Part shown: piece after piece, positions 8,591-54,699 of the stretch | Position numbering within the stretch: the first letter of the stretch is position 1 | Layout of the letters: each line of letters begins with the position of its first letter | Source of the DNA: Kudoa neothunni | Taxonomy: Eukaryota; Animalia; Cnidaria | Reading direction: 5' to 3' | Length of the DNA stretch: 64,000 nt | Assembly: GCA_964304625.1 (NCBI GenBank) | Contig: OZ199839.1 | Location: forward strand, 5,450,898 to 5,514,897 | Program-made: the position numbers and the translations under genes | The notes under the pieces: model-generated | Told to the model about the DNA's origin: nothing | Database searches by the model: none | The model's input: the letters and a program-made list of their open reading frames with translations, nothing else

Positions 8591-10118
8591 TGACATGGAT
8601 TGATTTTTGTCGTGGGAATCATATCTTACATATGTTTAATATTACGATATTTTTTCCGAAGTTTTGTGCGTTTATGTAACATTTTAGGATTTGCATGTTT
8701 TAGAGGAACATAAATATATAAGGATAACATCCATCTATAATATGATTTTCGACAATTCCACCCCAAATCATAGAAGTCGATTAAATATGGAGGGTTTTAT
8801 TTTTTTAAATTATCACAATAATGTACAAAGTTTTCAAACCAAAATTTAACATGGGCTTACTGAAGGTACTACTAACTTTGTTTGAAGCAGAAAGTATGAA
8901 TATATAATAATTCTTAATGGTTAGAATTAAATAATTGACTTCTTCGTAGAACTAATGTTTGATTCACAATGTAAGTTATTTTACAATGGTACGATTAGTG
9001 AAAATCTTGGGAATACATTTAAAATCTGTTTCTTTATTATCAACTGCTTTTAAACCTGATGATATGATATCTTCCCTGTCATCAGCCTATTTTAGATCGC
9101 ATTCTGGCTTGAACCTAGGCGTTGTTTAATCGGTGGACTTGTCGCGTTTTTTTTTCAGAATCTAGAAATTTTTTTGAATTTTAACATAACTCTTAGGAAT
9201 CTTTAAAATAAATTTACAATAATAGTAAAATTTTATGGCATTAGCTTTAAAAAAAGTCTAAAATTGCCACAAACCGATGATTAATACCCTAATGCGAACT
9301 TTGTTTAATAATGGAATAAGATGAATTCAATGCACCCTCCGTATTATTGGTATTATGATTAAATATAAAAAAAGGTGAATTATATGGTCAAAAGTATAAT
9401 GGTATGAAGAAAAATATTTGCTAACACATATATCATCAACATCTATTTAATTTAAGAAATACGTTATATAAACAATTAAATTAAAGTTCGGGATTCAGCA
9501 TTTGACTCTAAAAATTCTTTAGTTTGAGAGGTTTTCCATACGTTTCCTTTAAGGTTGCTACCGCGATTACTTTTTCATTTTCCGCGGTAAAGGCATTTAT
9601 CAATTTCTATAATGAAGTCTTCCACGCTAACTTTATTTTCTCCAAGGGTGGTTGGCTGCGTTTTCGATTTTATTTGAATAACGCTGATATTGTTGGCATA
9701 CTTCCCCTATTCGGTGGTGGTTCGAATGGTTTCATAAATGAACCAACGATATAATGTTTAAAAAATATTCTCAATGCTAAATTTTAGTTCCGGGTCATAT
9801 AAATGTTAATATATGGTCGGTGTTGGTATACCCCTCCTCAGGAATAATCATGACTTTAATGCCGCCAATCAAAATCGTTGGATGTATGATGCCTAAAAAG
9901 GTTTAGTTTGTCTGTTTCTATGGATTAATTTGAAACATTAATATCTTTTTTGAATGTTATTACAAAATTTCACCGCGCTTAATATTCCCACACAAAGCTG
10001 GGCAGTTCGCGCTAATTATGTATATAGAAGATAGTTGATATGATTTAAACAAATGGCGTAATTAAAGAAAAACAACTAATTAACTAACTAAATAAATGCT
10101 ACTATATGCAAACTATGA

Positions 10119-13100
10119 TCATAGGTGTGTCTTAAGGATGGCTCCTTTATTTCTTACTCTTCTTTTCCACCTTCTAAAAATAAATATACCCGTGATCAAT
10201 AATATTGATTCCACAAGTGGTATCAAGGCATAAAGACTAAAAACCATTATTTAAACAGAATGATGTGATTATAAATTTACATGTAAAATTCATAAGACCT
10301 ATTAAAAAAGGGTAAAACATTAGAATGATAGCATAAAATACGCATAATTATTTGTCGCCGTCTCATAGTCTAAGGTTCCTTTAGCTTCTACTCATATTAA
10401 ATAATAAATATTTATATATTAATTGAATAACTAAATAAATATATACTACTCTGCGTATCATTAAATAAATATATACCCTCCTTGAACTCTTGTAATCACA
10501 TCTTCGGTGATATCCTCAAAATCAACATCATCATATTCGCTCTTTATGTGTTGCTCTTGTAGATATATTTACGTTAATATAGTTCCTCTCAATAATACAT
10601 TTACTAAAAAGAATATTATAAAACATAAAGGATATTTTGGTTTTACCCTATTAATCGTGACACTTTTTTGTCTTCATATGTATATAAACAGATAATTAGT
10701 TTAAAAATATTGAAAATAATGCAAGCAACTTATTTACATGGAACATCTTCTATTTTGTATTTTGAGTAGCCCTTCACTTTCACTTCCAAAATGTAATCTT
10801 TGTCTTTGGACAATCCATTTATCTGAATAACGCATTTATTTGCTGAACACTCCCGATCATTATCATGACACCAAGCAGTCAATGGACGTTTTTCTTCATA
10901 TTCTGTATTCTCGTAAAACATAAAAGGACAAATCGAATTTTCATTTTTTTGATCAAAATTCACATCGATTTTCAAATCACTCTCTCCATAATACGTATAT
11001 TTGATATCAATCTCACCATTTTCTTAAAAATTATTCTATAAGTAGACTAAATATTATTCATTACTTATTTCTATTTCATAGGTTTTATCTTGTTTGTCAT
11101 CAGATGGTTCAACAATTATTTCGTACGTTTCTCCTAACTCGAGATTAGCTATGTTAAATTCACTATCACATTTGTTTTCACAAATTCCCATTCCATGACA
11201 AACAGCCATATATTTTGAGTTGGATCCGCCTTTCTTTTTAACATACAATTTGCACATAAGTTTCTCATTATTAGATTGAAGTGGGGTGATTTTAACGCCC
11301 TCTTTATCTAGGATTGGACCTTTGCTTGATTCACTCAATGCAGCATCACCAACTAGTTAATTTTAGCCAAAAAATCTAAAATAGAATATACGGGTTCTGA
11401 AGGTGATTTTCTTGGTGTAATTTTCCTTAAATCCGAGGTTTGAAACTTGAGTTGATACCACATAATTAGTACCAGGAGACAAACTAGTGATCGAATATGA
11501 GTTATCACAGGTAGTGGTGCATTTGTTAGAACCACACTGAGCCGTTGATTCAATAGAAGAGGAGTGTGCTTTTGAGATTCTAATGTTACATGATGGGGTT
11601 TCGCCATCTTTGTTTATATTCTGATAAGTATTTAGTCCAGTCAAAGTAACCCCGGTTTTGGTTAATTCCGACAAAGTGAATCCATTGTCACCCTCTAAAA
11701 GCAATAATTAGTGGGGAAAAAATTAAACTTACTTTTAAAATATTGTTTGTGTTTCTTTAGATCATATCTTCGTTTCACAATGACTCCAACTTTATCGTAA
11801 TCTTCATTTAAATTTATTACGCCGTCTTGGCATAACTGATAACACCCATCTGTTATATTGTCACAGTTATTCAGAACCTTATTTTCTTGATCCGTACCCT
11901 CTTCATTCACTTCAAAGACCTTAACGTGACACATTTCATCGTTATACGGACCAGGAGAGAAATAGATTTTTAACTTCCTGTTGTTATCATTAACTTCAGA
12001 AATGGAGAAAATAATATTCGTTTTTAAAGGAATTGTATCATTCACAAAAGTATTATCTTTGAAATAAAGCAACTGAGGCCACATAATGGTTGAATCAATC
12101 CTATAATTATTTTTGATCTCATTAATTGGGAGAATGATAGATTTATTTTCAGGGGTATCAGAATAGTCAAATACAGATAAACCATTATTATCACTATTTA
12201 TCACCTTTGATTTATCAGCAATAATTCTAAAGTCGGTTTTGGATGTTGATTTGTAGGAAAAACTAATTTTGTCGCCAACATGTTCCAACTTGTACGTGTT
12301 TTTATGTAGGTTATCTATAATAAATAACATATATTTAATGAGTGTTTTATATATGAGAAGAATGAATATGTTTTGGCTGAACCAACTGTTTTTGTTAATT
12401 ATCTAGGTAAGCATCATAAGTTATTTTATTTACCCATTATTATTGGAAAAACCGAACCCCTAATAGAGGTCTTGGCATTATCGTCATTATCACCGTAAAA
12501 AACTGCTATGTATCGATCCACTTTTGAATTTACATAACCAATTTCAAAATCTGTTACATCACAATTCACAACACAAACATCACCGTTGATGTGTGAGGAA
12601 CAACTTGGTTTTTTGTAAATCGTGTTTACTCCAAAGCTAGAAATTTTTATTGCGCATTTATTATTTTTAGGAAATTCTGACAGAGAAATCGAAAATTTTC
12701 CAATTCCGGGTTCGTCTTCGTTTGAAGGTATGAACTTCTGCTTTAGTTTACCAGATCGGAAAAATGCTAAACTGATATAACTCTAATATACGTTATGTAT
12801 TTCACCTGGGACAAAAAGTTCATGCGGCGCTGATTTTCCGCTTGCGTACACGATTAACCTGTAGTTATTTTCACTGCTATATAAGCCATTATCTAGATTA
12901 ATTTGATTGCATTTTGAGACCAAGAATTCAGTTGTGTGTCCTGTACATGGTTTTGACAGATCCGTTGATGAATCTAAGTTATTTTATTCTAGAAAATTCT
13001 TAATTATTTACTTTCATCCATTTCATATTTACATAGCTGATAATAACAATCAGTTTCATTAATGTTTTCAAAATTTTTGTCAGGAATTATTTTAAGTGTT

Positions 13101-16100
13101 TTCCTTGTTGATTCATTGGAAACTTTAAAAGTTATTGGCTCTCCAGCTAAAGAATATTTTCGAAAATTTGAATAAAAATATTACCTGTTTTTTGGTTTTT
13201 AAATATTTGTTCCGCGTAATCTCCTGTAGGCACTACTTTTATATCATAGTTGGCACCCGAATTTAATCCAATAATATTAAATTGTGTATCGCAGTTATTG
13301 ACACATGGTTTATTTCCTCTACAAACTGCCGGAATGTATCCAAGATTTGAATCTGTTTGTTTCAAGTAAATTGTGCATTTGCTTGTCGAGATTGTGGAAC
13401 TGGGGATGAGACTAAATCCGTCAGTGGTGGAAGTAGTACTAACGGCGGTGGTTGAAAGACTGTTCGGCGATTCTTAAAGAATTATAAAAATATTTTACTA
13501 TAAAGGATTACCTTTTCTATAATAAAAGTATTTCATTACTTCATGATTGGGAATCGTTTTGATATTCACAGAAACCTCATTAAGTAAATGACGTGTGCCT
13601 AGCGATATTTCCATTTCATCTATTCTACAAGTCACACCTTCGATTGTTTTTTTATCCCATTCATAATTCAACGGAGCATAAACATTCCAATAATTTAAGG
13701 TACAAAGATTATCAACAAGAATTGCAAATGGTTTACCATCCTCATCCAACTTAGCCTTCGTGATATTAATTTTGATATTAGAACCGGATATTGTAGGAGG
13801 AATATCATTTAGGTGTTTTACTAAAATAAGTTAATTCAATTTTATACCAAATTTAAAATTACAAAAGTGAATGTTGTTATCATAACTATATAACGGTACC
13901 ATTCCTAATTTAAGGACGCGAATTTTTACTGCCTTCACATTTTCTGGAATACTATCAAAAGTAATACTACTACATAAGCTGTATAAACAGTTTCTATTAT
14001 TTTTGCACTCGGTAGAATAAAAGGTATTTTCTGATAATGGTGTTGCATCGATCCATTCGAATGTGCATAATTCCGATGGTTCCTCGTTAACCAATTTCAC
14101 CGTCAACCTCCTGTTTGATTCATTAATCGCCAGCTCAAAATAGAATCTATTAAAAATGGGCGCACCATTTTTTGTCAACGTATTATCATAAAAAAAATGG
14201 AAGTCGAAATGTTTGGGGCAAATTATGTGGTAGTCCTCAACGTTTTCATCGAATGCAACTATGTAATCTCCCCAATTACAAGAACCTTTTAATATTTCTG
14301 GTTTTTCTTTGATAGAATCTTGTTTTTGATTGTCTTTGTAGATTGCACAATTTAAGGAACATTTGTGTGAGCGTAAATGAAGTAGATCGAGACCAATTTT
14401 TGCTTCGTAATGGACATTCTCAAAATAATCTTAATTATTTTATAAGATTGTTTACGATTAAATGTTACCTATATAATATGAAAAAACTTTTCCTTTATTA
14501 ATTTCTTTTGTAGTTATTTGTGGTTCGGCTGGTTTCAGCGGTGTATTTCTTCCGTCTGTACCATCGCCTTCTTTTGCGTCTTGTCCATTTGCCCCACCTG
14601 AATCTTGCACAACTTCAGATGTAACTGACACAGTGGACTGTATTTCTGGAGAAGTTACACTTTCACTTGTGTCCGATTTTATAGTTATTGTTTCTTCGTA
14701 TAAAACAGAAATATAGTTCAATTTATTGGTGTTATCGTGAGAAATAAAAAATTCCTTTCCCAAATTTTGGCAATTGTGTACGTTTAAGGCTCCATTTACA
14801 CCAGAATTTTCGTATACACTCAAATCAGATTTTGCCTTCTTGACAGTGCATTTTTTATTAGTTAACTCTGTTAGATCACCCCTAAATTTAACGCTATATT
14901 TCTGAGCATTCGAATCATATCGCAGAATCATTTCTCCATTACCATCAACTCTGTCACCTAAGAATATTTGATTTAAGTATTAAGAAAATAACTACTTGTT
15001 ATATCTCTGTAAGAATATTTTGTATATCCTTTGTTTACCGCAATTATTTGGTATATGACTTCAGAATTAAGTTTGCTCCATGGAATATCTAATTTAGTGG
15101 TATCCTCGGAAACTAACACCGAAGGATTGCAGTTGCTGTTCAAACAATCAATAATTGTTTCCATGGAATTTTTTTCTATCAAAAGATAAGTCCACATAGA
15201 TTCAGAATTTTTTATTGAAGGAGTCATTGTGACAGTAGTCTTTTGTTTCGTGACATCATTACTTGAAGTAAGTGACAGTGTATCTCCGGTAGCTACGAAA
15301 CGATATAACGCTGTTACTAAACAAAAATTACTTTCCACTTCATTGCTGTCGACACATGTGTACCCCTTAGAGCACACAGTTATTTTGTACTTGGTTCTGG
15401 GATCAAGATTTATAATTTTGAAAGTGTCATTGCAAGCACCAACACAAAAAACATTTTTCCCGTTCATTTCACAAGTGGCAGGAAACTTGGATGATTCACT
15501 TCCAAAAGTCGAATAGTAGAGTTCACATTTAGTATCAGTATTAGATTCAGATGGAAGTAGATTAGGTAAAGTTAGAGTCAACTTTGTGGGGTTCTTTTCG
15601 ACGGAAGATAGTGTGATAGGACTGGAAGATGAAAATTCCTTTCCTTTTTAAAACATATAAAGATATTTATGAAATATATATAAAGGTACCTTTAGTTTTA
15701 AAATAAAAATATCTATAGTAATATTTTGATTCTTTAAAATCTCTTTTAATCATTCCAATTATTTTAATTCTGAGAATATATTCTGTCGACGGCAGAAGTG
15801 AGGTCAAAGTTATTGAAGAGAAAGTATCACATTTATCATTAATACAAGTAGGAATAATTCCGTTATTTCCGATTCCCATATATTTCTTTATTAGTTTTAT
15901 TTGTCCGATTTTAACTCCGTCTATAACAGCTTCATTTGATCCATCTTTGTTAAAATATGTGAGATCAACGGTCACATTATTATTTTCATGAGTAACGTCG
16001 TGTTGATGGTTGTTGACTAAGAAATACTTAATTTATATAATGAGACTAAAATTTACATGTTAATAGTTGAATAAAATCCCTTGATATAGATTTAGTTATC

Positions 16101-17097
16101 GGCCTTACAAGTAGATTGGCATATGACATGGTAACCCTTGGATGCGTCAAATAAGCCTTGTCACAAGGTTTATAACACGATCCATACGTGTTCGATAGAG
16201 AACAACTAGAGTAAAAATGGTTTTCTGCAATAGCTTTTATTCCGAAGTAACATATTAATGAAGGTTTTGGATTTACAAGCGTTATTTCATAGAAAAAGTT
16301 ATGTCTACCATAATTTGTAATCAAACGAGCACCGGTTGCTATAAAAAAATCTTCAGTGGGTTTTTGTGGATTAAAAAATATTTCAGGTGATCGATTATCA
16401 AATTCGATTATATACTTAGGTTGATCCGACAATGGACTTAATTTAATAGAATTTTCTTTGAAGAAAGCATCATTTGATACTACCCTCGATTCTTGAGTAC
16501 CATCAATTTTCGAGGTAAAGCCTCCGTTGACTTTGCTTTGAATAGTTAATGTAAACTCTTCATCTGCCTTGACTGATGAAATCGTAGTTTTTACGTAAAT
16601 ATCTGAAACGAATTTATCCACTCTAACATGAATGAGTTATACCTTGGAGTATAAAAACTTTTTTGATGGGGCATATTTTTAGATCTTCATTGTTTTTACC
16701 TTGGCACCATCTTAGAGATTTAATTTCTTTGAATTCGTCTCCATTCATTTTGAATTCAACCTTCTTACAGTCATAGATGCACATATTTGACCCTGGTTCC
16801 CCAGCACTATTTTCTATATAATTAACACATGAAGAAAATAATTTGAATGCGTTGGTTGCTTTTTCATAAAATTGGAGGGCACATTTTTTACTACTATTTT
16901 CGATTCCGTATCCGGAAAGAGAAATAGTATATTTATTATCCACGTTTGAGAAAGTAAGTTTCATGATGGAATTATCAATATTATTAGATGCCGCATTACT
17001 CGAGATAAACCCTAATTAAAATATATTTGATTTTTTCAAATAAATATTTACATGTGATGCAACATATAATTATTGATGTGAAACGGTTGCACAGCAT
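10119..17097 (-). CDS. Large (~2,000 aa) single-pass membrane protein with tandem Cys-rich fibronectin-type-III-like modules; multi-exon
   Basis: ATG at 17097 gives the signal-peptide-like MLCNRFTSIIICCITWFISSNA. Fifteen GT-AG introns (17012-17051, 16603-16642, 16017-16056, 15644-15689, 14958-14995, 14430-14468, 13821-13862, 13473-13511, 13147-13184, 12974-13011, 12767-12805, 12315-12433, 11695-11732, 11353-11391, 11023-11064) join the ORF-track pieces into one frame of 1894 codons down to 10738. FN3 tyrosine-corner motifs recur (LSPGTNY, LDPRTKY, LLPSTEY, LNSGANY, LELGETY). The TM exon 10236-10119 reads LYALIPLVESILLITGIFIF-RRWKRR. Splicing in 10342-10737 and the true 3' end are unresolved. 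Confidence 0.85.
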
Positions 17098-18319
17098 ATC
17101 ACTCAAGGTTGCGGTACCTGCGTCAAAATAGTCAGACCAATTTGTGGTTTATTCATATACACTTTTAATACCCTTCGAGTTTTATTCGTGTAATACATAT
17201 GTATTTATTGTAATCCTTTATTGAAAATAACATTAATTGTTTATACAAACAATGATCACGAGGTGTTGTGTCGTTTAAGTGTGTCTCATTCAAGCGTAAT
17301 TTAAAAAATACAACATTGATGATTTTGATTGTAAACATATGCCAATAATAATGTTCATTTTTAGTAAGATTTATACCGTATTCAATCCAAAGAAATAAAT
17401 TGACCATGAATTGTTGTTCAATAGTCGAACCCATACGATACATTTTAATTGTTATATGTCGTATTGCTAATAACTATAGCTATCCTATCCTATTATTAAA
17501 ATAAGACTACCAAAACTAGGAAACTTATGTTAGATCATGCAAATCTGTTTACCAGAAAATTTATTATTTTAAAAATTTCAGTAAAATACCTAAGTTTCAT
17601 TCATGAGAGACTAACAAGAACTGTCCAGCTTTGCATGGGAATATTAAGCACTGAGAGATTTCCTAATAACATTAAAAAGCATATTAATGTTTCAAATTAA
17701 CTCATAGAAACAGTAAAACCAAATATGTTTTGTAAAAATCATACTTTTAACAACTGTGAACAACGAAATTAAAATCATAATCACTTCTGGCGGGGGTGAA
17801 CCAACAATAAACAATAAAAGATCGATGTCCTGTTTAGTATAATTCCCAACTGTTTTGAATTTGTTCAAAAGTGTTATCTTAAATGTTATTTTTTGTCCCT
17901 CGAGATTTTTCAATGAGGAAATCCGGCCCAGCTCACAAAGTTTGCGCACTACAGTTTAACCTTCCATGCATTTTGAAAAATTACATATTCCAAATAAAAA
18001 TAAAGTCAAAATCACCCCAGATTTTGGTTGATAACAGTTTTTAAATATTATGTGATATTTATTAGGGAAATTATAGCTAATTCTATCGACGAAATTTTGA
18101 AAAAATGATAAAACATTGGGACTTTATAAGGCATATTGATGTGCACGAGTTCTCGATAATTTCGTTTTTTGTTCTAAAGCAATATTTGAGCAGTTGATTT
18201 TACGGTTATAGGAATTAAAAATGTTCACTCCTACAAAATACAAAATATCAACGAGCGCAGCCAATTTTTATTTAGTACAATATCTTTTAGTGAAAAAACT
18301 CACATTAGTAACACAATTA

Positions 18320-19800
18320 GCCTATTCCTTAAAACAGTTGTTACAGAAATTTTTTGGATGTTCTCTACTGCCTGAATTTAAACAAAATGAACATTTTATT
18401 GGAGTTTTCTCGTCACGTTTTTCTCCTGCAAAATTCACACTTTAGGATAAAGCTATTCCGGCTAACGCTCAAAAAGTTGTTACGACGAATAAAGGTTAGG
18501 TGGGATTCTTGATTCTTTCTCGTGACCAGTTTTTTGGCCAGTTCATAGGCCATGAATTTCATAAATGAAATCCTAATGAGCTTGGATAAATTATTCAATT
18601 CTTTAAATAGAAAATGCATTTATTAGCGATGTGTTCACCATATTAAAATCACAACCAGAAGTCAATGATGAGTAAATCTTATAAAACTGAAAGACAACAG
18701 TAATCTAGCGATTTTATCCATCCCTCCGTCGACTCGGTTATAATGTAGCGTAATTTCAGGTTTGACTGGCTCGTCCGACGAGGTTTGGATGACTGTAGAG
18801 GACTTGAAAAGAACATATAACTAGCTTATTTTTTGGGTATATATCTGAGCACAATTTTCTTCCCATTAAATACGAAGAATATAGGATTTATAAGAGAATT
18901 TTTGGAAAGGTGTAAATAAGGCGAGATATCCCTTTTGTTGGCACGAATCGTACCTATCATTGTCAATTTTTTTGTCAATAATTCCTCTGCCAATTCAACA
19001 GAAGTGAAGAAGTTATCACTGAGAAAATCTTTACCGGATCGTCAGAATACTTGGAATAGTCCTATCAACTTCGGTAAAATATTTTTACAACATTTATCGC
19101 CTTATTGGAATTATTTGGTCTTCCCAAATAAACATCAATGTTGTACACCTATGTTGATTTGGGATCAACCACCAGGAAAAACTTTATGACGTACGTAGCA
19201 GAATTGTTTCGCATGTATTTCTTAATGGGACTAACTGCTCGTCAACACACATCTTCAACGGGACGGAAACAATGAGGTAATAAATAAACTCAACGAGCCC
19301 AAAGCTCACATAAATGAAAAATTCTTCATATTATATTGTCTTCCATACTATCTTTGTCATAAAAATGAAGAGATTTAGCAAGTTGCCTAAGTCTATTTAA
19401 TGAAAAGAGATTGTGATGAATCTTTCTTCTTCATCGACCCAAAACAATAATGAAATTGGTTCTTGCATGTTTTTATGAATCGCTATCAATAGCATACATC
19501 CAATTCTACCTTATCTAATGTTTTGCTGTTACCATCGAAATAACTTTTCTCAAATTGGTTCGTAAATTTCCACATAATTTCATACATTGTTTTGCTGAAA
19601 GAAGCCGTAGCGTATCAATCATTTCATTTACGTTATTAGATATAAAAGGAGAAACGCCAGATCTATTATTCATGATATTCTCGGCTCCTGTTTTAAGGAT
19701 AAAGATTTCTTATCAGTCCAAAAAATGATCTAATTGGCACGTCAACATCGATTTCCGAGACATTCGAATTAGATTTAACGCGACTTGAATGATCAGCATT
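18320..19800 (-). pseudogene. Degenerate piggyBac transposase (not evident in the ORF track)
   Basis: Minus-strand motifs MCVDEQLVPLR (~19240), SDNFFTSVELAEELLTKKLTMIGTIRANKRDI (~18930-19020), HYNRVDGGMD (~18730), and the C-terminal Cys domain CEFC..RDEKTPIKCSFC..EHPKNFCNNC. Confidence 0.85.
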
Positions 19801-20236: not shown

Positions 20237-23200
20237 CACTTGTACTTACACTCGGGGTCCAATGGACCCAGAGCATGGTTGTTGCTTATATAATGACTCT
20301 CTCAATAGAGTCAGAAAGTCAAAATTTAGTATAGCTTCCTAAATATTTGTTGTATTTTTTTCATATTTATATGATCTAATGATGATTGAGTGATTTTTTA
20401 TTTAATCAAAAAAAAGTTATACCCTCTTATGTACAAACTGGATCCAAAAGACCCAGTAGAATAACTTGACAATTAACGCCTTTAAACAAATAAAAACTAA
20501 TACAAACAATAAAACAACAAAATATATTTAATAAAGAAATCTAAAAATCCAGATTTGACAGTAACGAAATAAAATATCTCTAAATAATTGCACCTTTGTT
20601 TGTTTCGAGCCATGCCTAAAAATTATAAGTTGCTGCATACTTTACCATAACTTCTACAATATTTAATTACAATATAATTTATTATAAATAAAATTATGGT
20701 TTTCTACGTCGAAATATCTAGGAATAGTTATTATTGACCCATAGTTGGTTTTCGTTGTTTTTTCGGCTCTGGCATAAAACCGCCATAAAAACTTTCATTA
20801 TTCTTAAAATTTTATTATTTTTTTAATACCAATGAATGAATGAATTTTGTATTTATTACTACAGTATAATTATAGTAAATAGTGTATTTGTAAAGATATG
20901 ATAATAAATAGCTTACATCTTGTGCTTAAATTCTACTGCAACGAAAAATTTATGATATTAGTCTCTTTGAGGGTGTTTTTGTGAATTTAGAAAAATTATA
21001 CTTACTTGTATGAGATAAATTAAATTTAAGAACTACAGATTTATCTAAGATAAGTTATAATGGAAGCAATGTGAGGCCGAAAAAGCAACGAAGAACGACC
21101 AGCATGCTAAATCCTAATAATCCTACATTTGTTACTTGAGAGATGAGCTACAGGAATTTGATCGAAGCAGTTGATGAAATTGATAATTATGATAACGAAA
21201 TAAGTTGCATAGGTATTGTAACATTACCTCCTGAAACGGTGGATATTTTAGCAGACGAAGAAAGTTTTGTCAACCTAGATTCAGACAATGTTGACATCTG
21301 GAATGTCCCCTTAGTTTGCTGGGAAGTTGAGATATTTTCAACATTAGATGATGGTCAGACTGCTAAGAACTCCATGGCCAAGTGGAAAAAAAATTCTTCA
21401 TTCATCGAATTTATCAACCGATGTGGGAACTAATGTTTTTTTCACAAAACAAAAATGAATTGCCAACAAACGTTTCGCTCGAAAAATACGATTCACTTGA
21501 AGCATTTTATTAATTTTGTGGTGAAAATTTATTGATGCACATTGTTAAAAAAAGTAATCTGTATGTTCGCCAGAAGAATGACCATTCTTTCCACTTATCG
21601 TTAAAGGAACTAAAATCATTAATTGGTATTTTACTACTGTCTGGATATAATAAATTATCCCAACAACATATGTATTGGGAATCTGCAATGGACTCTGGAG
21701 TTGATATAGTCAGAAAATGCATGTCCTATAAACGCTTCAAGACTATAAAGTCATATATTCATTTGAATGATAACACCAATTTAGATCCTGAAGACAAACA
21801 TTTCAAACTTAAACCAATAATAAAAAAACTGAATGCAAATTTTAAAAAATTTGGTGTTTTCCATAATAACGTTTGTGTCGATGAAAAGATGGTTCCATAT
21901 ACCTGTCACCACTCATGCAAAATGTTCACGAGAGGAAAACCAATTCGGTTTGGTTTTAAGCAATGGATATTGGCCTCTGCGGATGGTTTTGTGTATAGCT
22001 TTGACGTTTATACAGGCAAGTCGGCGAAATATGATAAATATTCTGGCCTCGGTGGCAGTGTTGTGCTGAATTTTGCGGACGATCTTAACGATAAACCAAA
22101 TGCTCATATTTATATGGACAATTCTTTCACATCCTATAAATTGTTCGTTGAACTGAAGAAAAGATCCCTCAAAGCAATCGTACTTCCAAATGCCCGCTTA
22201 CAACAAATAAAGTGATGGAAAAAAATCGAGAGGTTTCTTCTAAACATTTAAGGATAAAGAATTTGGCATTGATTGTCTATATTGGTGAGACACAAAACCT
22301 GTAGCTCTAATGAGTAGTGCATTAAATGTCGGACCTGTCCAACAAATCCGACGATATTTTGAATCTAAAAAAAGATACGACAACGTTCCTCTACATCACA
22401 TATGTTATATGTGTAATAAATACATGAGAGGAGTCGATGTCGTCGATGCTTCAGTTTCATATTACAGAGTAAATATAAAATCTAAAAAATGGTACTGACC
22501 CCTGTTTACCAATATGTTGTTATCCCTGGCAATGGTTAACCAATTTATTGGAGTTAACCATAAAAATGATGGAAAAATAGAATTGTTAAACCATATTCGA
22601 AATATCATAACATGTTTAGTTAGCATTAGTGACCATGAAAAACTTACCAGCACATCGTCCCTATCAAAACTCTGAGCGTCATCATTGTGCAAAAAACCCT
22701 TTATTAATACCCATCCTGCAAAAAAGAAACGTAGATGTATAGTTTGTAAAAAAACTACAATACATTTATGTGCGAATTACCAATGTTATATGCATATAAA
22801 ATGTTCAATAAAATTCCGTAAGGCATAATTATTTACAATTATTTCACTTTAAATGAGCTATTTTTTGTATACCGCAAACATAAACCTGCTATTGGAAAAT
22901 CTCACGTCTGTAGTTTTTCGGCAAGTTACGAATTCAACTGTAATTCATTAAATAGTTAATATTTCGAATATCTATTACACTTGTGTTATTTATTCATGAT
23001 TTAATACGTATATATAAATTATAAATAAAATCTAAACATTGGACCCGTTATGGGTTAAGGATAGTAACAAATTAATCCTTTGTCGCCCTAGTGTAGCTGC
23101 TAATCTGTGTAGAATGTTAACTCTTGATGATGCGATAAAAATGACTATGCAAAACTCAGAAGACTCTAACACGGATGAGAATCTGTCTTCTGATGAAGAA

Positions 23201-25041
23201 ATAGACAACATTATAGAAGAACCAATTTCAAGCGATTCGGAGAATATTTCTGATATTGAACAATCTCAAGAGGAAACTCAGTTCTCAAGAGACAAATTAA
23301 TTAAATGGGAGTCGAAAATAACAAATAAGGCGGTTAGAACACGTCACCACAATATTGTAACAAATTATGTATTTAGGATCCCAAATGAAGTTACTGAAAA
23401 AATATTTTTACCATTGAATTCATTCAAAAGTTTTATTGGAGATGATATTATTACAAAAATAATAATTTCGACAAACAATTTTTTGGAAAAGAGAAAAAAT
23501 AAAATAAAAATTAATGATTCTGGTGTTTGGAAATGGATAGGTGCTAATATATATCTTGGAATAATGAAAAACAAAAACTCTTCATTACAAGAGTTATGGA
23601 ATAAAGAAAAAGGTTTACCGGTTTTATCGAAAAGTAATAAATCATTAATAAAATTTAAATATAAACATATGGAAATAACATTTATATATTTTATAGTAAT
23701 ATATCATATCGGAGGTACAGAATTATCTCTGAAAGTATTCTTTTCGATGACTGCGTACGTAGAGCGTGACCCTCAGAGAAAAGACTCACCAATTAGTTTT
23801 TTATGGGATTCATTTATAAATAATTGCCGAAGTAACTACATACCATCTGAGCAATTAACAGTGGATGAATAGCTTTGCACAACAGGGGGTCGTGTGAATT
23901 TTAAAACTTATATACCGAGACCGAGTAAACCCGGAAAATATAGTATCAAAATTTGGGTCTTGGCAGATGCCCAAAATGCTTACTCGTGTAATGTCTAAAT
24001 TTATACAGGAAGATCATCAAATGGTCCAGAGGTAAATAAGGGGAACGAGTTGTCAGAGAACTCGAAAATCTTTATCTAATATCTAGATAAAGGAAGAACC
24101 ATAACTACTGACAATTTTTTCACAAGTTTAAACCTGACAAAATATTTAAGAGGCCGTAAGACAGCCCTAGTCGGAACTGTGAGAAAGTCACGTAAATTTT
24201 TACCTACGTGCTTTCAACAGAATAAAAAAGAAGTTGGATCTCAGTTTCTTTTGCATGATAGGATCACGCTTGTTAAGTTTTGTGAAAAGTCAAATAAGTC
24301 TCTTTTGCTTCTCACTTCTCTACACAACGACAATAACATTGAGGAAGATGGGAAACCCGAAATAGTACATTCCTATAACCAGACTAAGGCTGGCGTAGAT
24401 GTTCTTGATCGGCTTATTCGATTCTACACTGCGAGAGGAAGAACTCTGAGATGACCACTTACAATATTCTATATGATTGACATTGTTGGTTATAACTCAA
24501 TGGTTGTATATTTGGAAAAATATATTGAATTTAAGTCAAAATATAAAAACCGTACAAGGTGGCAATATTTACAAAATTTAGTTGATGGAATTGTTGAAAC
24601 ATACGGTAACGAAAATAGTGACCCTTCGCTTATCGAACCATCAAATTGCTATAGAAAGGGTGGGAGAAGAAGATACAGATTGTGCCCCTCTATAATAGAC
24701 ATAAAAACTAAGACGATCTGTTTTAAATGTGGAAAAAACGTTTGTCAACGACATTATTAAGTTTTATGTAAGAATTGTCGTTGATTTTTTGTCTATTATA
24801 AAATTAAAAATTCACACTAGTATATTTGTGATGCCATCCACGTCAGTAATGGCGTTGTGTTATATCTTGTTTTTTACAACGTAGCGACAAATTATTAACA
24901 TGATATTAACAATAAACCAATTTTTCTTCATTTATGTAATATTGATAATCAGTTGGACAACGCTAATTCCAATTTTACCGACTGGGTCCCTTGAACCCAG
25001 TTTTTGCAACAGTGTGATTTTTTGGGACGTACGTGCGAGTG
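20237..25041 (+). mobile_element. piggyBac element (outer) with TTAA TSDs, interrupted by a nested piggyBac
   Basis: TTAA|cacttgtacttac ... gtacgtgcgagtg|TTAA imperfect TIRs, with subterminal gggtccaatggaccc / gggtcccttgaaccc near-palindromes. The decayed transposase at ~23114-24783 has LTVDE, ITTDNFFTS, YNQTKAGVD and a Cys tail. Confidence 0.8.
20738..23054 (+). mobile_element. Nested piggyBac (PGBD2/3-like) element
   Basis: The transposase at 21143-22829 has VCVDEKMVPY, KPIRFGFKQW, IYMDNSFTS and NKYMRGVDVVD. Candidate ends are ttga|cccata ... tatggg|ttaa, with an internal inverted repeat at ~20747-20769 / 21073-21100. The transposase is secure; the boundaries are less certain. Confidence 0.8.
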
Positions 25042-49639: not shown

Positions 49640-50310
49640 TTAAAAGTTGTTTTCGGATGTTTCCAGAATCCCCAGCGATATATATGGATCTGCCTGTTTA
49701 CCAATGTTTATTAGTTTTAGGTTATGGTCCCATTATCACCTCATTTTCGACTGCCCATTGGCAGCTAAGGAGATGTGATTAGGAATCTCTCGATATCATT
49801 CCGCAGTTTACCGAACCTTCATTCCTTAAGGGAGGAGGCGTAGTGACGGTGTTAGGAGCTTGCCCGCCCTTATAACCTTTCCTAACGCTACAGTCTAATG
49901 GAATATTTTTTGTCGTCCCCCGTGTAGTTGTCTTCCCCAGGTCCCCCACCTCGTGGTTGCACTGGTATCGTTGCTAAGGTCTCCACTCTAGATACAACAC
50001 CCTGACTGCTACATTTCCTGCAGGTGTTCCGAGGACGCTTTCCACCCATTTTTGATTACCGGATCGGTATTTATTTGAGGTTTCGCGCCCAATATTGCTA
50101 CCAGGTTTGTCGAACCCTGTCATGGCCACGTCGCTTACAGTACTCGCGACGGGGTAAAGAATCTTTCCAGTAGAAATTATTGGTTGGTTAGATGGATTGT
50201 AACATTGACTCATTGTAACCATGATTTGTTTCGGGTGCCGGGGCGTTAACCCTGAACCCACCCTCATCTTATTGCATCCGGGCTTGGGACCGGTATATGC
50301 TGATTTACGA
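49640..50310 (-). mobile_element. GC-rich putative 5' region of a second non-LTR retrotransposon
   Basis: Minus-strand ccggtcccaagcccgg..gagggtggg (from 50293) resembles the 5'-end motif I recall from RTE-type and other LINEs. There is an abrupt GC shift and no RT downstream. Confidence 0.5.
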
Positions 50311-50319
50311 TTTTTACAT

Positions 50320-53300
50320 ACTATTTAAAAGCCGTCCACATTGCGGCTACCTGTTTGCATGTGTGGGTTAGCACATATAGGGTAGGTCATATGGCGTTCC
50401 ACATAATAGCTACTCCAGACAGGTGCTGACGGTCATATCAATTCTGTGGAAGAGGGGGAAGAGGTAGGGACATTTATTGCGCGAGGTGCGTTTTTATAAC
50501 TCTCAGCGACCCTAGAAGGGTTGTTTGCTGGAGTTATTATAATTTTCGAGGCTATTTCTTTATTATTTTTGAAGATGATTGGAATCCATTCCTACAACAT
50601 TTCAGTGTTACCAAGGCAACCAACAATAATTGGCATGACTTTCACTACGAAGTTAGGTCGATTCCTAGCGATATCGTTAGCTAGTGCTTGGCACTTTTCA
50701 TGCTTTTCCCATGCTCTACTTACAGAGTCCGTCTATACATATACCTATTTCTAGTATGTATATTACCCTCTTGTGTGTTATTTCAAGCGGTAGATCTAGC
50801 CGCCTAGCTTGTATTGTGTTACTTGTCCCGCATATGGGGTCATATTTGATTGATCCTAGTTTCGATTGGATTATTCTAGGGATAGGTCCCCAAGAATTTG
50901 GAACTTGTAAGATATATTTTGAGATATATCTCATGAGGCATTTTGCGACTTCGTCATGCCTCGATTTGTATGTTGACCATGTGTGAACACTGCACATGGC
51001 CAATATATGGGGGATGATCTCACGATCTCTATCACAGAGTCTTCACGTGGGTTTATGGCAACTTGCTTGATTCGGGCCTCGTAATCACGACACTTTAAAA
51101 CGCCATCTTGTGCCGTCATGATAATACATGTTGACCTAGCCGATAGGTTCTCATTTACGAGCCAACTATTTGAAAATTCACCTTTGATATCCTTTTGTTG
51201 AATACCGTGGATGATTTTCTCCCGCCATCTCACAAACTGTTCCTCGTAGAATACTCTTTTCAAGGAATCCGGAGTTGGGATCATCTCTTCAGGAGTGATG
51301 TCTAGCGATTTGCACAACAGCGTGAGCCGTTCCCCCCTAGGGTACGTTTTATCGTTCACCACCTTATTCAGGTTTAGAACGTTCTTGACGAAGTCATCAT
51401 TACTGCCGTACAAATAATTTAATACAGAGACCGAGGTCACCCGAGCAAGATTGCAACTCAGAATACCTAATCCATCATCACATGGCTTTAGCACCATTCT
51501 TTCAATTGCCAGATCCATGTTCCAAGTCCACGCTTTACTCAACACTTTCCTCAACGATCTATCAAAGCGGTGGCATTCAGTCTTCGTTAGAGGCATGACT
51601 TGTATGGCATACCTTATCCTAGCTCCTACCCTACTACTCTATTTTGGGCTTTGACTTTACTCTTCAAATCAAGTGGTGAGTTCAAAATGATCTTGGAGGT
51701 AGTTTCAAGGTCCTCTGTGAAGATTTTGAACGGGATGTCCTTCTTTATGCCAAGGGCAGGGCTTGAGGTGAGCCCAGATATTTGAGGCCAAGTCCCGCCT
51801 AATGCCGGGATTTTGGCGATATCAATCCTCTTACCTCGATGAACTACAATCGTGGCACACTTGGATAGGTTCAGGTCCATCCCATACCCTGTAGCGATCT
51901 TATCTTCCTAATCTACACTAGTATTTAGGGCAGCTAGTGTTTAACTATAGGTTTTAAAATCATCCATATAATATTGATGATTATATGATATATTGATACG
52001 AGTTTCGTAAACTCTGTCCTTTTATTAAGGTAGAGGGATATTGGCGCTATTGCCCAACAAAAGAGAACAGGAGAGAGGCCATCGCCTTGCAACACATCCT
52101 TAGAGTATTTGATAGGGGAACTCTCCTGATTTGTCTGACCTCCGCTAGCCTTATCCCCCTAATTTTGATATCCTGAAACTTAAACCTTGTAATCTCATCG
52201 TCGCAGTGTAGAAAGTTGCAAATAATTTATTAATGTTGGTTTGTGTGTTAACATATGATAATGAACCCTTTCGAGTTCTGCCGGCCCATGGTACCTCCTT
52301 CTCTAAAGGATATGTTTCCATATATTATATGTGCCTTCGACAGTTCTAACCACAACCAACTCGCATTATTGCTTCTGCTTTTAAATGTAACCTATGCTGC
52401 CTCATCTGTCTCCTCTGCAGCTTTTGCCCCACGTCTCCCAGCTGCTAGTGTTTGCTCTTGGACCACGATTCTCTCTCTTCATTGTTCTGATGTGGGTTGG
52501 AGCTCCATCGCTTCAACGCCGGCTCGGTGAGATATATTTTGTTGAGATCACTGGACCTTGGTAGCGTAGCATAAATTAAGGCAGTGCATTTCTCAGAAAT
52601 CGCTCTTGCTATTGACGTGTTTGCCACTTTCGCCATGGTCAAAAAAGAGTTCCTTTCACCCAACCTCGAGCCTTTTAATAAGACCTTGTTGAGAATCCAA
52701 ATTCATACAAACAGTTAATAAACTTTTCATTTCTAAACTTTGTGTGATGAAGTTAATTTTTATCTCATGTAGTCTTCTAGTCTTCCGTCGGCAGCTGATA
52801 CGTTTAGACTGATGTCAGTCCGACTTTTCATCATAGTTAACAAGCCCTTCAGCCTCTGAGATTGGCTGTATCTCAGATATAAAATTATCGGCGATATTTA
52901 TAGTCGTCCCTAGAGACCGCTAACTCACCCATCCTTCGGCTCCTATAAAGGGAGTTCCCTGCAAAAAGAAGAGACTGCACCGAGAGTCACATCACCACTT
53001 GGGACGATATACACTCTTTTTGGAGAACTTACCTCACTACATTATCAGCTAGGTACCCATCCCTGACGGATTTGTATCAACCACTCATGATCGGCAGCCT
53101 CGCGTACCGTTCCCGACAGATTCCGACCTCACGCTCCTATGGGTTTTGTCTTCTCTTTTTTTTCGATTTTTAAATAGGATTGCCTTCCGGCTTATGGCCG
53201 GCAGAAATAGATTTATGACTTTTACTAAATTGTGAAATTCGGCCACATTGGGCTGTTCTCTAGGACCCCTATCGAGTATCGAGACTAAAGGATGGCTAAT

Positions 53301-53790
53301 CGTTGACCTAACGAACAGGAAAGTTTAGCTACCGGAAGTCTCCTGAAGTGTAATTAATTAAATTACGTTTTAAACAAAGATGCAACCTCGATGGATTTAT
53401 TTCTTTAGTCATGCACGCCCTTAGCGTACGAACTGAACCTACCGACGTATGTTGTAGCTTTTCTATGGTGATCTCGATGTCTCCTTTTATTATTAATGAA
53501 CTCTGGATCACGTATATGTATACTAACAATCCAGGAACAGGGTTTAATCCCATTAACCCCCATTATGTGAGAGTTACAAAAAGGAAAAAAAACTAATCCG
53601 ATGTATATCGCCAACCTTATCCCCTAAATTTAGGACAATTCTGCGGTTCAGGCGCTACATGCAGTTACCGTTGGACGCCAGCCAACTCCGAAGCGCACAA
53701 CGACCCATGCGGATTTCGACCTTGCGTACCGTACATAAACGACTGAAGATTGAGACTGATGAATCAACCACTCCGAAAACAGATTACCTT
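50320..53790 (-). mobile_element. R4/Dong-like non-LTR retrotransposon (RT + restriction-like endonuclease), degenerate
   Basis: QGDGLSPVLFCWAIAPIS, NHQYYMDDFK, GMDLNLSKCA, AQDGVL..RDY, RHDEVAK, IQARRLDL (PD-like) and ILEIGIC. It has multiple frameshifts and an internal RT deletion; the ends are approximate. Confidence 0.88.
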
Positions 53791-54699
53791 GAGCGGAAAC
53801 ATTAAATTTTTTATTTATATATCTTAGTAGGAAATATCTTGTTGATGGTTCATATTTTTTATACCGAAGACCCTTCTATAATGAATTATTTATCATTATA
53901 AAAAAGTGCTAAAGATACGAAACGTGATAGTTGCATCGTTATAATGTATTACCGATCGATAACTTTTTGCTATTCATTGATAATTATATCTTTCACTTAT
54001 TTTAATAAATATTGTCTGCAAATGTTTTGTCTTAAACGCCATCTACAATTCAGTCCAAATAGAATTGTGTAAAATGATATCGTTGTCTCATTAATCATTT
54101 GGTACATGCGATTTTCAGAATAATTACCTTACGTTAGATAAATATAGATATATATATATATCTATGTTAATTGACTCAATACGGTTTCATAATAGTTTTT
54201 CAGAAACTATTAGGGAGAAATGTAGCGTATATTATTTAAAACACAGTATTATATTTTATTCTGTAAAACACTTATAGCACGGTAACGTCTTGTATTTTAT
54301 CACTTATAAGTATTTAAAAATGTCACGTAACCAATTTAAGAATTATGTTATATGAGCTGAAGAGTTATTGTTTGTTATTAGTGTAGTTAGTCATGTTAAT
54401 TGAGTTGACTTGCTTCAATATATTCGTAGATAATTTCAACTTAACTTATTTGAGTATACTTAACTCTGTCATAAAAAAATGCATTGTTATAAATAGAATT
54501 TTCTGCAGAGCATTTTTGACACAAAAGTTCATATATGGTAATGCTACAATATAGACTACATTTGAACGGGAAAATTAATGATTAATCGATACACAACCTG
54601 TTCATTACACAAGCTAAAATTATCATGAGCATTGAACAAATATTGTTCATTCCATGTATCTATAGATAGCTGTTTGATCATTCCCATGAATTTATCATG

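Follow-up and report, generated by a model that had tools for sequence, protein, structure and literature searches.

The stretch of DNA analysed here, referred to as the window, comprises 64,000 nucleotides (nt) of the myxozoan Kudoa neothunni, a parasite of tuna muscle (GenBank assembly GCA_964304625.1, contig OZ199839.1, positions 5,450,898 to 5,514,897 of the forward strand), and its positions 10119-17097 hold an intact coding gene on the minus strand, hereafter the target. A preliminary description, made from the letters of the window without database searches, had placed in this span a giant surface protein built from an unusual Cys-rich module resembling fibronectin type III (FN3) domains, and the limits it gave are exactly the stop-codon and start-codon limits of the gene. 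Between the ATG at 17097 and a stop codon whose last base is 10119, we obtained 21 exons with 5,952 coding nt and a product of 1,983 amino acids; internal stops were absent and every junction was GT-AG. All coding potential in the span lies on the minus strand. The 16 ectodomain exons were obtained by chaining open frames with GT-AG introns, and all 15 introns between them were in phase 1, with lengths of 35-46 nt apart from a single longer one. GC content was about 30% and the typical intron about 40 nt. The published K. neothunni assembly, which was derived from yellowfin tuna data, amounts to 40.2 Mb with an N50 of 12.0 Mb, in three chromosome-scale scaffolds and a circular mitochondrial genome; its median intron is 49 nt and its annotation contains about 5,300 genes (PMC12239612).

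The predicted product opens with a signal peptide and continues with about 18 beta-sandwich domains, after which come a stalk rich in acidic residues and Tyr, a single transmembrane helix and a basic tail of 18 residues. Its 1,983 residues include 64 Cys (3.2%), 11 Trp and 13 N-x-S/T sites. Hydrophobicity in 19-residue windows (KD19) singled out one strongly hydrophobic window, at residue 1946 (KD19 2.21), with the N-terminus next (KD19 1.55). The signal-peptide-like N-terminus, the single hydrophobic helix and the short basic tail support the proposal of a surface protein. Searches and folds were run exon by exon, and exons were joined only for the frame check, the motif counts and the alignment of domain 12. 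The ectodomain was divided into 18 domains by exon boundaries and two structure models; domains are named below by exon, with a and b for the first and second domain of an exon.

Exon 1 (17052-17097) carries the start codon and the first 15 residues, a signal-peptide-like segment with a basic residue and a hydrophobic run into exon 2, and is 92% conserved in the closest paralogue. The membrane-distal domain 1 is encoded by exon 2 (16643-17011) and has six conserved Cys, among them the four-Cys spacing described below; it is kin to domain 13. Exon 3 (16057-16602) holds domain 2, which has no Cys, and domain 3, a four-Cys domain akin to domain 9, and exon 4 (15690-16016) holds domain 4, which has two Cys and is related to the canonical module (52-69% to E05a, E14 and E16). 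In exon 5 (14993-15643), domain 5 (E05a) is a canonical four-Cys module with an extra Cys pair, chosen for structure modelling, and is followed by domain 6. Exon 6 (14469-14957) is the most variable exon, with a ratio of nonsynonymous to synonymous substitution rates (dN/dS) of 0.61, and encodes domain 7, with two Cys, and then a low-complexity linker of about 60 Ser, Thr, Gly, Asp and Glu residues. This linker (14469-14660, the end of the exon) breaks the domain chain near its middle and is the most variable part among paralogues; it could be a flexible hinge, possibly O-glycosylated. Exon 7 (13863-14429), among the best-conserved exons (dN/dS 0.27), encodes domain 8, which is immunoglobulin (Ig)-like and has four Cys, and domain 9, with the four-Cys spacing, and contains a hypervariable loop.

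The chain continues with domain 10 (two Cys) in exon 8 (13512-13820) and, after a Ser/Thr-rich start, with domain 11, a canonical four-Cys module, in exon 9 (13185-13472). Domain 12 (12806-13146) is the sole domain split by an intron (13011-12974), which separates exon 10 (13146-13012) from exon 11 (12973-12806). Domain 13, with four Cys, is encoded by exon 12 (12434-12766), which is followed by the sole long ectodomain intron (12433-12315, 119 nt). Exon 13 (11733-12314) encodes domain 14, without Cys, and domain 15, with the four-Cys spacing. Two further canonical modules follow, domain 16 in exon 14 (11392-11694) and domain 17 in exon 15 (11065-11352), the former being the best single match to the Pfam fn3 model, below its cut-off (E 1.3e-3, 19.4 bits). 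Domain 18, the membrane-proximal one, has four Cys and lies in exon 16 (10738-11022), the most constrained exon (dN/dS 0.23). The stalk (10281-10671) is assembled from four mini-exons (10671-10648, 10555-10478, 10369-10342 and 10298-10281) that together encode about 50 acidic, Tyr-rich residues (12 Asp plus Glu and 6 Tyr in 50 residues), and the acidic stalk exon is conserved among paralogues. The last exon (10119-10236) supplies the transmembrane helix and the stop codon and, between them, the 18-residue tail, in which 8 residues are Lys or Arg. At the other end, an upstream block of about 630 nt (17098-17730) has been duplicated along with the gene, is 82-94% identical to that of the closest copy, and is likely to contain the 5' untranslated region and promoter.

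Because the conserved small exons of the 3' part could not be joined in frame by ordinary introns, we adopted nested introns for this region. In this composite arrangement the G and the T of an outer donor are separated by an inner GT...AG intron, whose removal makes the outer donor. The first predicted pair (10556-10647) has its outer-donor G at 10647, an inner intron at 10646-10604 and the outer acceptor at 10556, and occurs at the same site in 12 of 12 paralogues. In the second pair (10370-10477) the outer-donor G is at 10477, the inner intron at 10476-10431 and the remainder at 10430-10370; in most paralogues a further composite follows the first at a distance of about 165-175 nt. The model of the tail is based on the composite donor pattern in those 12 paralogues (L032-L043) and on consistency of frame and phase, and it predicts that the stalk is spliced in two ordered steps per nested pair. 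Two other solutions were set aside. A search for the path with the fewest introns was discarded since it produced arbitrary open paths in AT-rich DNA, and a conventional tail, in which a weak phase-0 donor at 10745 leads straight to the acidic exon, was rejected because it skips a conserved mini-exon.

All of the paralogues compared had an equally short tail with the stop directly after it. In most of them (the last exons of L034-L043) the cytoplasmic tail has 13 residues, is nearly identical from copy to copy and ends in Tyr-Asp-Leu, an ending that could be a sorting or docking signal. The tails of the target, L032 and L033 differ from this majority tail and are more basic.

The four motifs that the preliminary description had quoted as examples of its module were all present, at residues ~496, 1158, 1662 and 1762 (exons 5, 9, 14 and 15). 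Within the ectodomain (1,895 residues) the spacing C-x(14-24)-C-x(4-16)-C-x(3-5)-C occurred 10 times, whereas 2,000 shuffled sequences averaged 0.7 occurrences and reached 5 at most. Ten of the 18 domains have this four-Cys spacing, 3 have two Cys, 1 has three, 2 have four Cys in another arrangement and 2 have none. The Cys columns were 90-100% conserved across 9-12 paralogues that were only ~50-60% identical overall, and intradomain disulfides are presumed from the even, invariant number of Cys per domain. The module alignment (A1) had no Trp column, and the canonical modules had no Trp, so that the claim of a missing Trp together with four conserved Cys was upheld. L79 and Y85 were nearly invariant in A1 and form the Leu...Tyr (tyrosine-corner) motif of the E-F region, and the conserved Cys of the module fall in strands C and C' and in the C'-E segment.

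Profile-profile comparison of the domains showed that E05a, E09, E14 and E15 matched one another at 89-98%, save for E05a and E14 (28%), and that E04 was weakly joined to this group. E02 and E12 formed a second pair (hhalign, 91%) and E03b and E07b a third (91%); the remaining domains had no demonstrable sequence kinship in this comparison. The recurrent four-Cys module is thus evident as a spacing, but a single module type accounts for only about one quarter of the domains, the rest appearing diverged or of another beta-sandwich type. The protein reads as a chain of old, individually distinct domains and not as a recent tandem repeat, in agreement with the lack of repeats at the DNA level.

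We modelled E05a with AlphaFold2 from an alignment of 27 module sequences and obtained an all-beta structure with a predicted local distance difference test score (pLDDT) of 84.2 and a predicted template modelling score (pTM) of 0.76. Foldseek matched the model to FN3 domains in the PDB (tenascin, fibronectin, monobodies, neogenin and contactin). With VIA-align, titin Fn3-56 was matched at Z 10.6 over 92 of 106 residues (root-mean-square deviation 2.5 Å), and the best 50 rows were all FN3 domains (Z 9.6-10.6); the matches included contactins, titin, neogenin, Dscam, ROS1, LAR and gp130. In the ESM Atlas the model matched fn3 clusters with template modelling (TM) scores of 0.66-0.71. The module profile matched titin, fibronectin, Dscam and tenascin-X chains by way of the E-F strand motif, and in a library of 1.84 billion proteins it gave hundreds of multi-FN3 matches, almost exclusively through profile positions ~68-100. 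The Pfam fn3 model recognised 10 of the 27 module sequences below threshold (best E 8.7e-4), and a Pfam search of the other exons returned no match. Together, the structural comparisons support an FN3 seven-strand fold for E05a.

A model of exon 7 (188 residues, from 30 paralogues) contained two beta domains at a pLDDT of 72.8. Taken as a pair, they resemble tandem FN3/Ig modules, including the cytokine-receptor type, at a weak level (E ~1e-3, TM ~0.3). Its first domain, E07a, resembles Ig domains with middling scores (Z 7-7.9), and an Atlas feature search with exon 7 yielded weak Ig-like leads alone (score 0.77). The FN3-like sandwich that had been proposed for the whole array is borne out for E05a, whose model matches FN3 domains alone, but the domains are heterogeneous: most look like divergent FN3 domains and at least one, E07a, looks Ig-like. 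As members of the FN3 superfamily (PF00041, the E-set clan of titin, contactins, tenascin and fibronectin), the Kudoa modules would share the predicted seven-strand sandwich, the Leu...Tyr motif of the E-F region and the tandem arrangement. They differ in falling below the Pfam cut-off, in lacking the strand-B Trp and in having four near-invariant Cys, whereas the FN3 proteins that they match are almost free of Cys.

FN3 arrays are typical of signalling receptors, and the gene might encode one that acts through a partner chain, in the manner of a receptor-type protein tyrosine phosphatase (RPTP), of sevenless/ROS1 or of a cytokine receptor. The presence of ROS1, LAR and gp130 among the structural matches and the weak likeness of exon 7 to cytokine-receptor tandem modules speak for such a receptor, and class I cytokine receptors are known to contain FN3 domains braced by disulfides. 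The rest of the protein does not fit. We found a tail of 18 residues with a conserved stop, no kinase or phosphatase exon, no Pfam catalytic domain in any exon and no WSxWS motif in the product, and about 67 copies are unlike the conserved single-copy receptors. The short tail and the lack of a catalytic exon rule out a self-sufficient signalling receptor, and we regard a receptor acting through a partner as largely refuted and very improbable. Full-length orthology to an RPTP, usherin or sevenless-type receptor, which the preliminary description had named as a finding that would overturn it, was likewise not supported, as the exon-by-exon searches found no cytoplasmic domain. Multi-FN3 receptors and adhesion molecules (LAR-type RPTPs, ROS1/sevenless, usherin, Dscam, sidekick and neogenin) are among the best structural matches and share the long FN3/Ig chain and the single-pass anchor; unlike the Kudoa protein, they carry catalytic or long cytoplasmic domains and exist in one or a few copies. 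Compared with the class I cytokine receptor module, that of Kudoa lacks WSxWS and has its Cys in C, C' and the C'-E segment.

One correction to the preliminary description is that the gene has some 66 colinear paralogues, about 67 copies in all, and is not a singular giant. A profile search with the module, which that description had recommended, led to further candidates in this genome and to three fragments outside it. Searching the genome with exon 5 gave 143 matches, and the module profile gave 633 first-look candidates. A search with exon 7 recovered at least 58 homologues that were open over their full length (46-94% identity) together with 9 broken copies (~67 in total), below which came a tail of matches at 20-29% identity that belong to other families. 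Copies of the family lie on all three chromosomes, often in arrays: 36 of the 67 have another copy within 30 kb, and 23 of the 67 lie in the terminal tenths of chromosomes, where 13.4 were expected. At about 7 kb each, the ~67 copies would occupy nearly 0.5 Mb, or more than 1% of the 40-Mb genome.

We fetched 12 loci. All 12 proved colinear with the target between exon 2 and the exon of the helix, and the best match of every exon was its positional counterpart. Their identity to the target was 30-65%, with one locus at 92-100%. The target itself is solitary and not part of an array, and in a tree it fell into a three-member clade (support 100/99) apart from 27 other sampled copies. Three other FN3-like loci (C2:9.795 Mb, C2:2.58 Mb and C3:8.69 Mb) share modules with the target at 24-40% identity without being colinear with it; their exon-7-type matches have 20-29% identity, and their introns are of the target's style. 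This suggests that the colinear family is one architecture within a larger superfamily of several architectures.

An estimate of dN/dS among paralogues, another step that had been recommended, gave values of 0.23-0.65 per exon over seven closer paralogues. The ratio was lowest in exons 16, 11 and 7 and highest in exons 14, 9 and 6, and every exon thus appears to be under constraint, if loosely. Whole domains, for instance E07b, E16 and E13, were strongly conserved, and in exon 7 there were 29 invariant columns across 30 paralogues alongside the hypervariable loop.

The closest copy, L032 (C2:7196500-7205500, at C2:7.20 Mb), is 96.9% identical to the target over about 7-7.6 kb, including the ~630 nt upstream, and is frameshifted in exons 5, 9, 12 and 13. 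The differences between the two were clumped (dispersion 5.2, p ~1e-40): 18 windows of 100 nt were without any difference, compared with 3.1 expected, and 8 had at least 8 differences, compared with about 1 expected. Identical runs of up to 569 nt adjoin patches of only 80-90% identity. L032 appears to be a recent pseudogene copy of mosaic history, and the clumping fits either several rounds of exchange between the pair or faster change at certain places. We looked for a third copy that could have donated the most divergent patch and found none closer than 73-76%. Import from a known donor copy does not fit the pattern.

We asked how probable it is that the target itself is a non-working gene that is decaying as part of a repeated DNA family and keeps its frames open by chance. 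Its closest copy is frameshifted, there are transposon remnants in its flanks, and about 45% of the genome is classed as repeats (PMC12239612). In addition, we found zero RNA reads on 10100-16099 in three RNA runs deposited under the species label, runs that possibly lack the organism; a search for sequencing runs that contain the stretch returned DNA runs only, and the DNA run was colinear with the genome, as expected. This explanation is nonetheless highly improbable, since 1,983 codons remain open over 21 exons at 30% GC, no splice site is broken, the Cys are conserved at close to 100% and dN/dS lies clearly below 1.

The size and turnover of the family bring in the main rival explanation, that of a variant surface antigen. 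Here the ~67 copies would form an archive, with expression limited to one or a few of them at a time, and exchange between copies would create variants that evade the antibodies of the fish. The large family, the arrays, the modest excess of copies at chromosome ends, the 9 broken copies and the mosaic differences between the target and its closest copy all suit this proposal, as do a hypervariable loop inside the conserved frame of exon 7 and a short tail that is conserved in most paralogues, as in other variant families. Antigenic variation has been documented in myxozoans, with a mechanism described as unknown, and VSP and RIFIN/STEVOR-like candidates have been proposed in Sphaerospora molnari (10.64898/2026.02.11.705288). 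Set against this, selection was net purifying in every exon, with E07b, E16 and E13 strongly conserved, and no third-copy donor was found for the most divergent patch. Kudoa plasmodia also develop within muscle fibres, a site of presumably low antibody pressure. We therefore consider a variant antigen unlikely, while ranking it ahead of the other alternatives. A broader proposal would see in the family the molecular foundation for antigenic variation, or for switching at the host interface, in a myxozoan, a cnidarian variant system made of disulfide-braced FN3/Ig domains that is diversified by exchange and of which one or a few members are expressed; we put this forward tentatively and think it doubtful.

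Known parasite variant families (Giardia VSP, Plasmodium RIFIN/STEVOR and the VSP-like proteins reported in S. molnari, 10.64898/2026.02.11.705288) resemble the Kudoa family in being large paralogous families of Cys-containing type I proteins with short tails, arrays and pseudogenes. They are of another fold and size, and the net selection in Kudoa is purifying. The signature of Giardia-type VSPs was absent from the product, which has zero CxxC or CxC motifs and 3.2% Cys as against >5-10%. A conserved tail end is shared by most of the Kudoa paralogues, but not by the branch of the target.

We also looked for relatives beyond this genome. A word-based protein search with exon 5 gave a single match of 119 residues, and an exhaustive profile search of 1.84 billion representative proteins gave 306. 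Among the best 150 of these 306, the Cys pattern occurred in three short fragments only, the others being Cys-poor generic FN3 proteins such as tenascin-X, and this agrees with the earlier suggestion of a lineage-specific family. Two of the fragments (L031 and L048) come from the European Nucleotide Archive metagenome ERZ28624939; they are genomic, colinear with exons 4-5 and 8-13, and 54-59% identical in protein sequence. The best DNA match of one of them to the K. neothunni genome was only 69%, which indicates that it came from another organism. The third fragment (L047, Logan SRR33849685) is colinear with exons 9-16 at 23-38% protein identity. Near-identical copies of these outside fragments were not found in this genome, and the fragments probably belong to different species, of Kudoa or other multivalvulids, that are present unnoticed in data from hosts or the environment. 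In the searchable literature there was nothing that joined Kudoa with fibronectin type III, and the sole paper on myxozoa and FN3 was unrelated. The words fibronectin, surface and transmembrane do not occur in the K. neothunni genome paper (PMC12239612). The colinear family has no description in the searchable literature, and its relatives beyond this genome are first seen here.

The closest cnidarian analogue, judged by description only, would be the Alr family of Hydractinia, which likewise consists of clustered genes and pseudogenes, dozens in number, whose surface proteins cross the membrane once and have invariant Cys (PMC9546547). The Ig/FN3-like domains of Alr also escape sequence motifs and were recognised by structure prediction (PMC9546547), and the Kudoa family adds another case of FN3/Ig-type domains overlooked by standard domain models. 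Unlike the Kudoa proteins, with their ~18 domains, tiny tail and spread over three chromosomes, Alr proteins have few domains, of the V-set/I-set kind, many have tails with immunoreceptor tyrosine-based activation or inhibition motifs (ITAM/ITIM), and the genes lie in one complex (PMC9546547).

Our preferred reading, to which we give somewhat better than even credence, is that of an intact gene for an extended adhesion or coat protein of the cell surface, belonging to a family of about 67 copies. The protein would be a type I membrane glycoprotein whose ~18 beta-sandwich domains project from the parasite cell, a long rod-like molecule that would bind host or parasite ligands through its outer domains or form part of a coat. 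The paired Cys, as presumed disulfides, would stiffen each domain, and with an 18-residue basic tail devoid of a signalling domain the protein would not itself signal. The conserved length, domain order and Cys point to such a rod-like binding or coat molecule, and the family has diversified by duplication, formation of arrays and patchy exchange or divergence between copies. The protein is a good candidate for a role in the contact between parasite and host.

Several points weigh against this reading. The data show the structure of the gene, the family, the pattern of conservation and the predicted fold; disulfide bonding, placement at the surface, ligand binding and expression are inferred, and none of the three RNA runs yielded a read on the gene. 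No exon reached the Pfam fn3 (PF00041) gathering cut-off of 25 bits, the best being exon 14. The structure models cover two of the ~18 domain regions, and the second is of moderate quality (pLDDT 72.8, Z below 8). Finally, the big family, the arrays, the pseudogenes and the mosaic divergence are also compatible with a variant antigen.

The rigidity of the architecture could also have another origin. A structural protein of the spore, or of contacts between parasite cells (valve cells, sutures or the envelopes of cells within cells), as opposed to a molecule that faces the host, might be expected to keep the order of 18 domains rigid and the Cys invariant across copies, as these features suggest a rod constrained in length and shape. 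Multi-FN3/Ig rods are common in cell-cell junctions, and contactins, titin, neogenin and Dscam were among the best structural matches. Some 58 intact copies that have diverged by 40-50% are hard to explain for a single structural task, however, and we think a structural protein quite unlikely, preferring the adhesion or coat molecule.

Myxozoans are extremely reduced animals, with about 5,300 annotated genes in the present case (PMC12239612), yet one family takes up more than 1% of this genome. Multigene families of this sort, on account of their many copies, may have been masked as repeats or under-annotated in the published gene set. How myxozoans attach to, recognise and evade the immunity of their hosts is largely unexplained at the molecular level, and these parasites are economically important in fish. 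A large surface-protein family that can be aligned offers concrete targets for studies of expression, localisation, serology and vaccine antigens. What is new here is the complete gene model, the test of the fold, the size and colinearity of the family, its pattern of selection and its outside relatives.

Elsewhere in the window, the part at 50001-54000 had a GC content of 0.41-0.43, compared with ~0.30 in the remainder, and includes an open frame (50931-51596, minus strand) that had no Pfam match. Just upstream of the gene lie fragments of piggyBac-type transposases, at 18829-19041 on the minus strand and at 21532-22215 and 23039-23872 on the plus strand (Pfam DDE_Tnp_1_7, E down to 3.7e-54).

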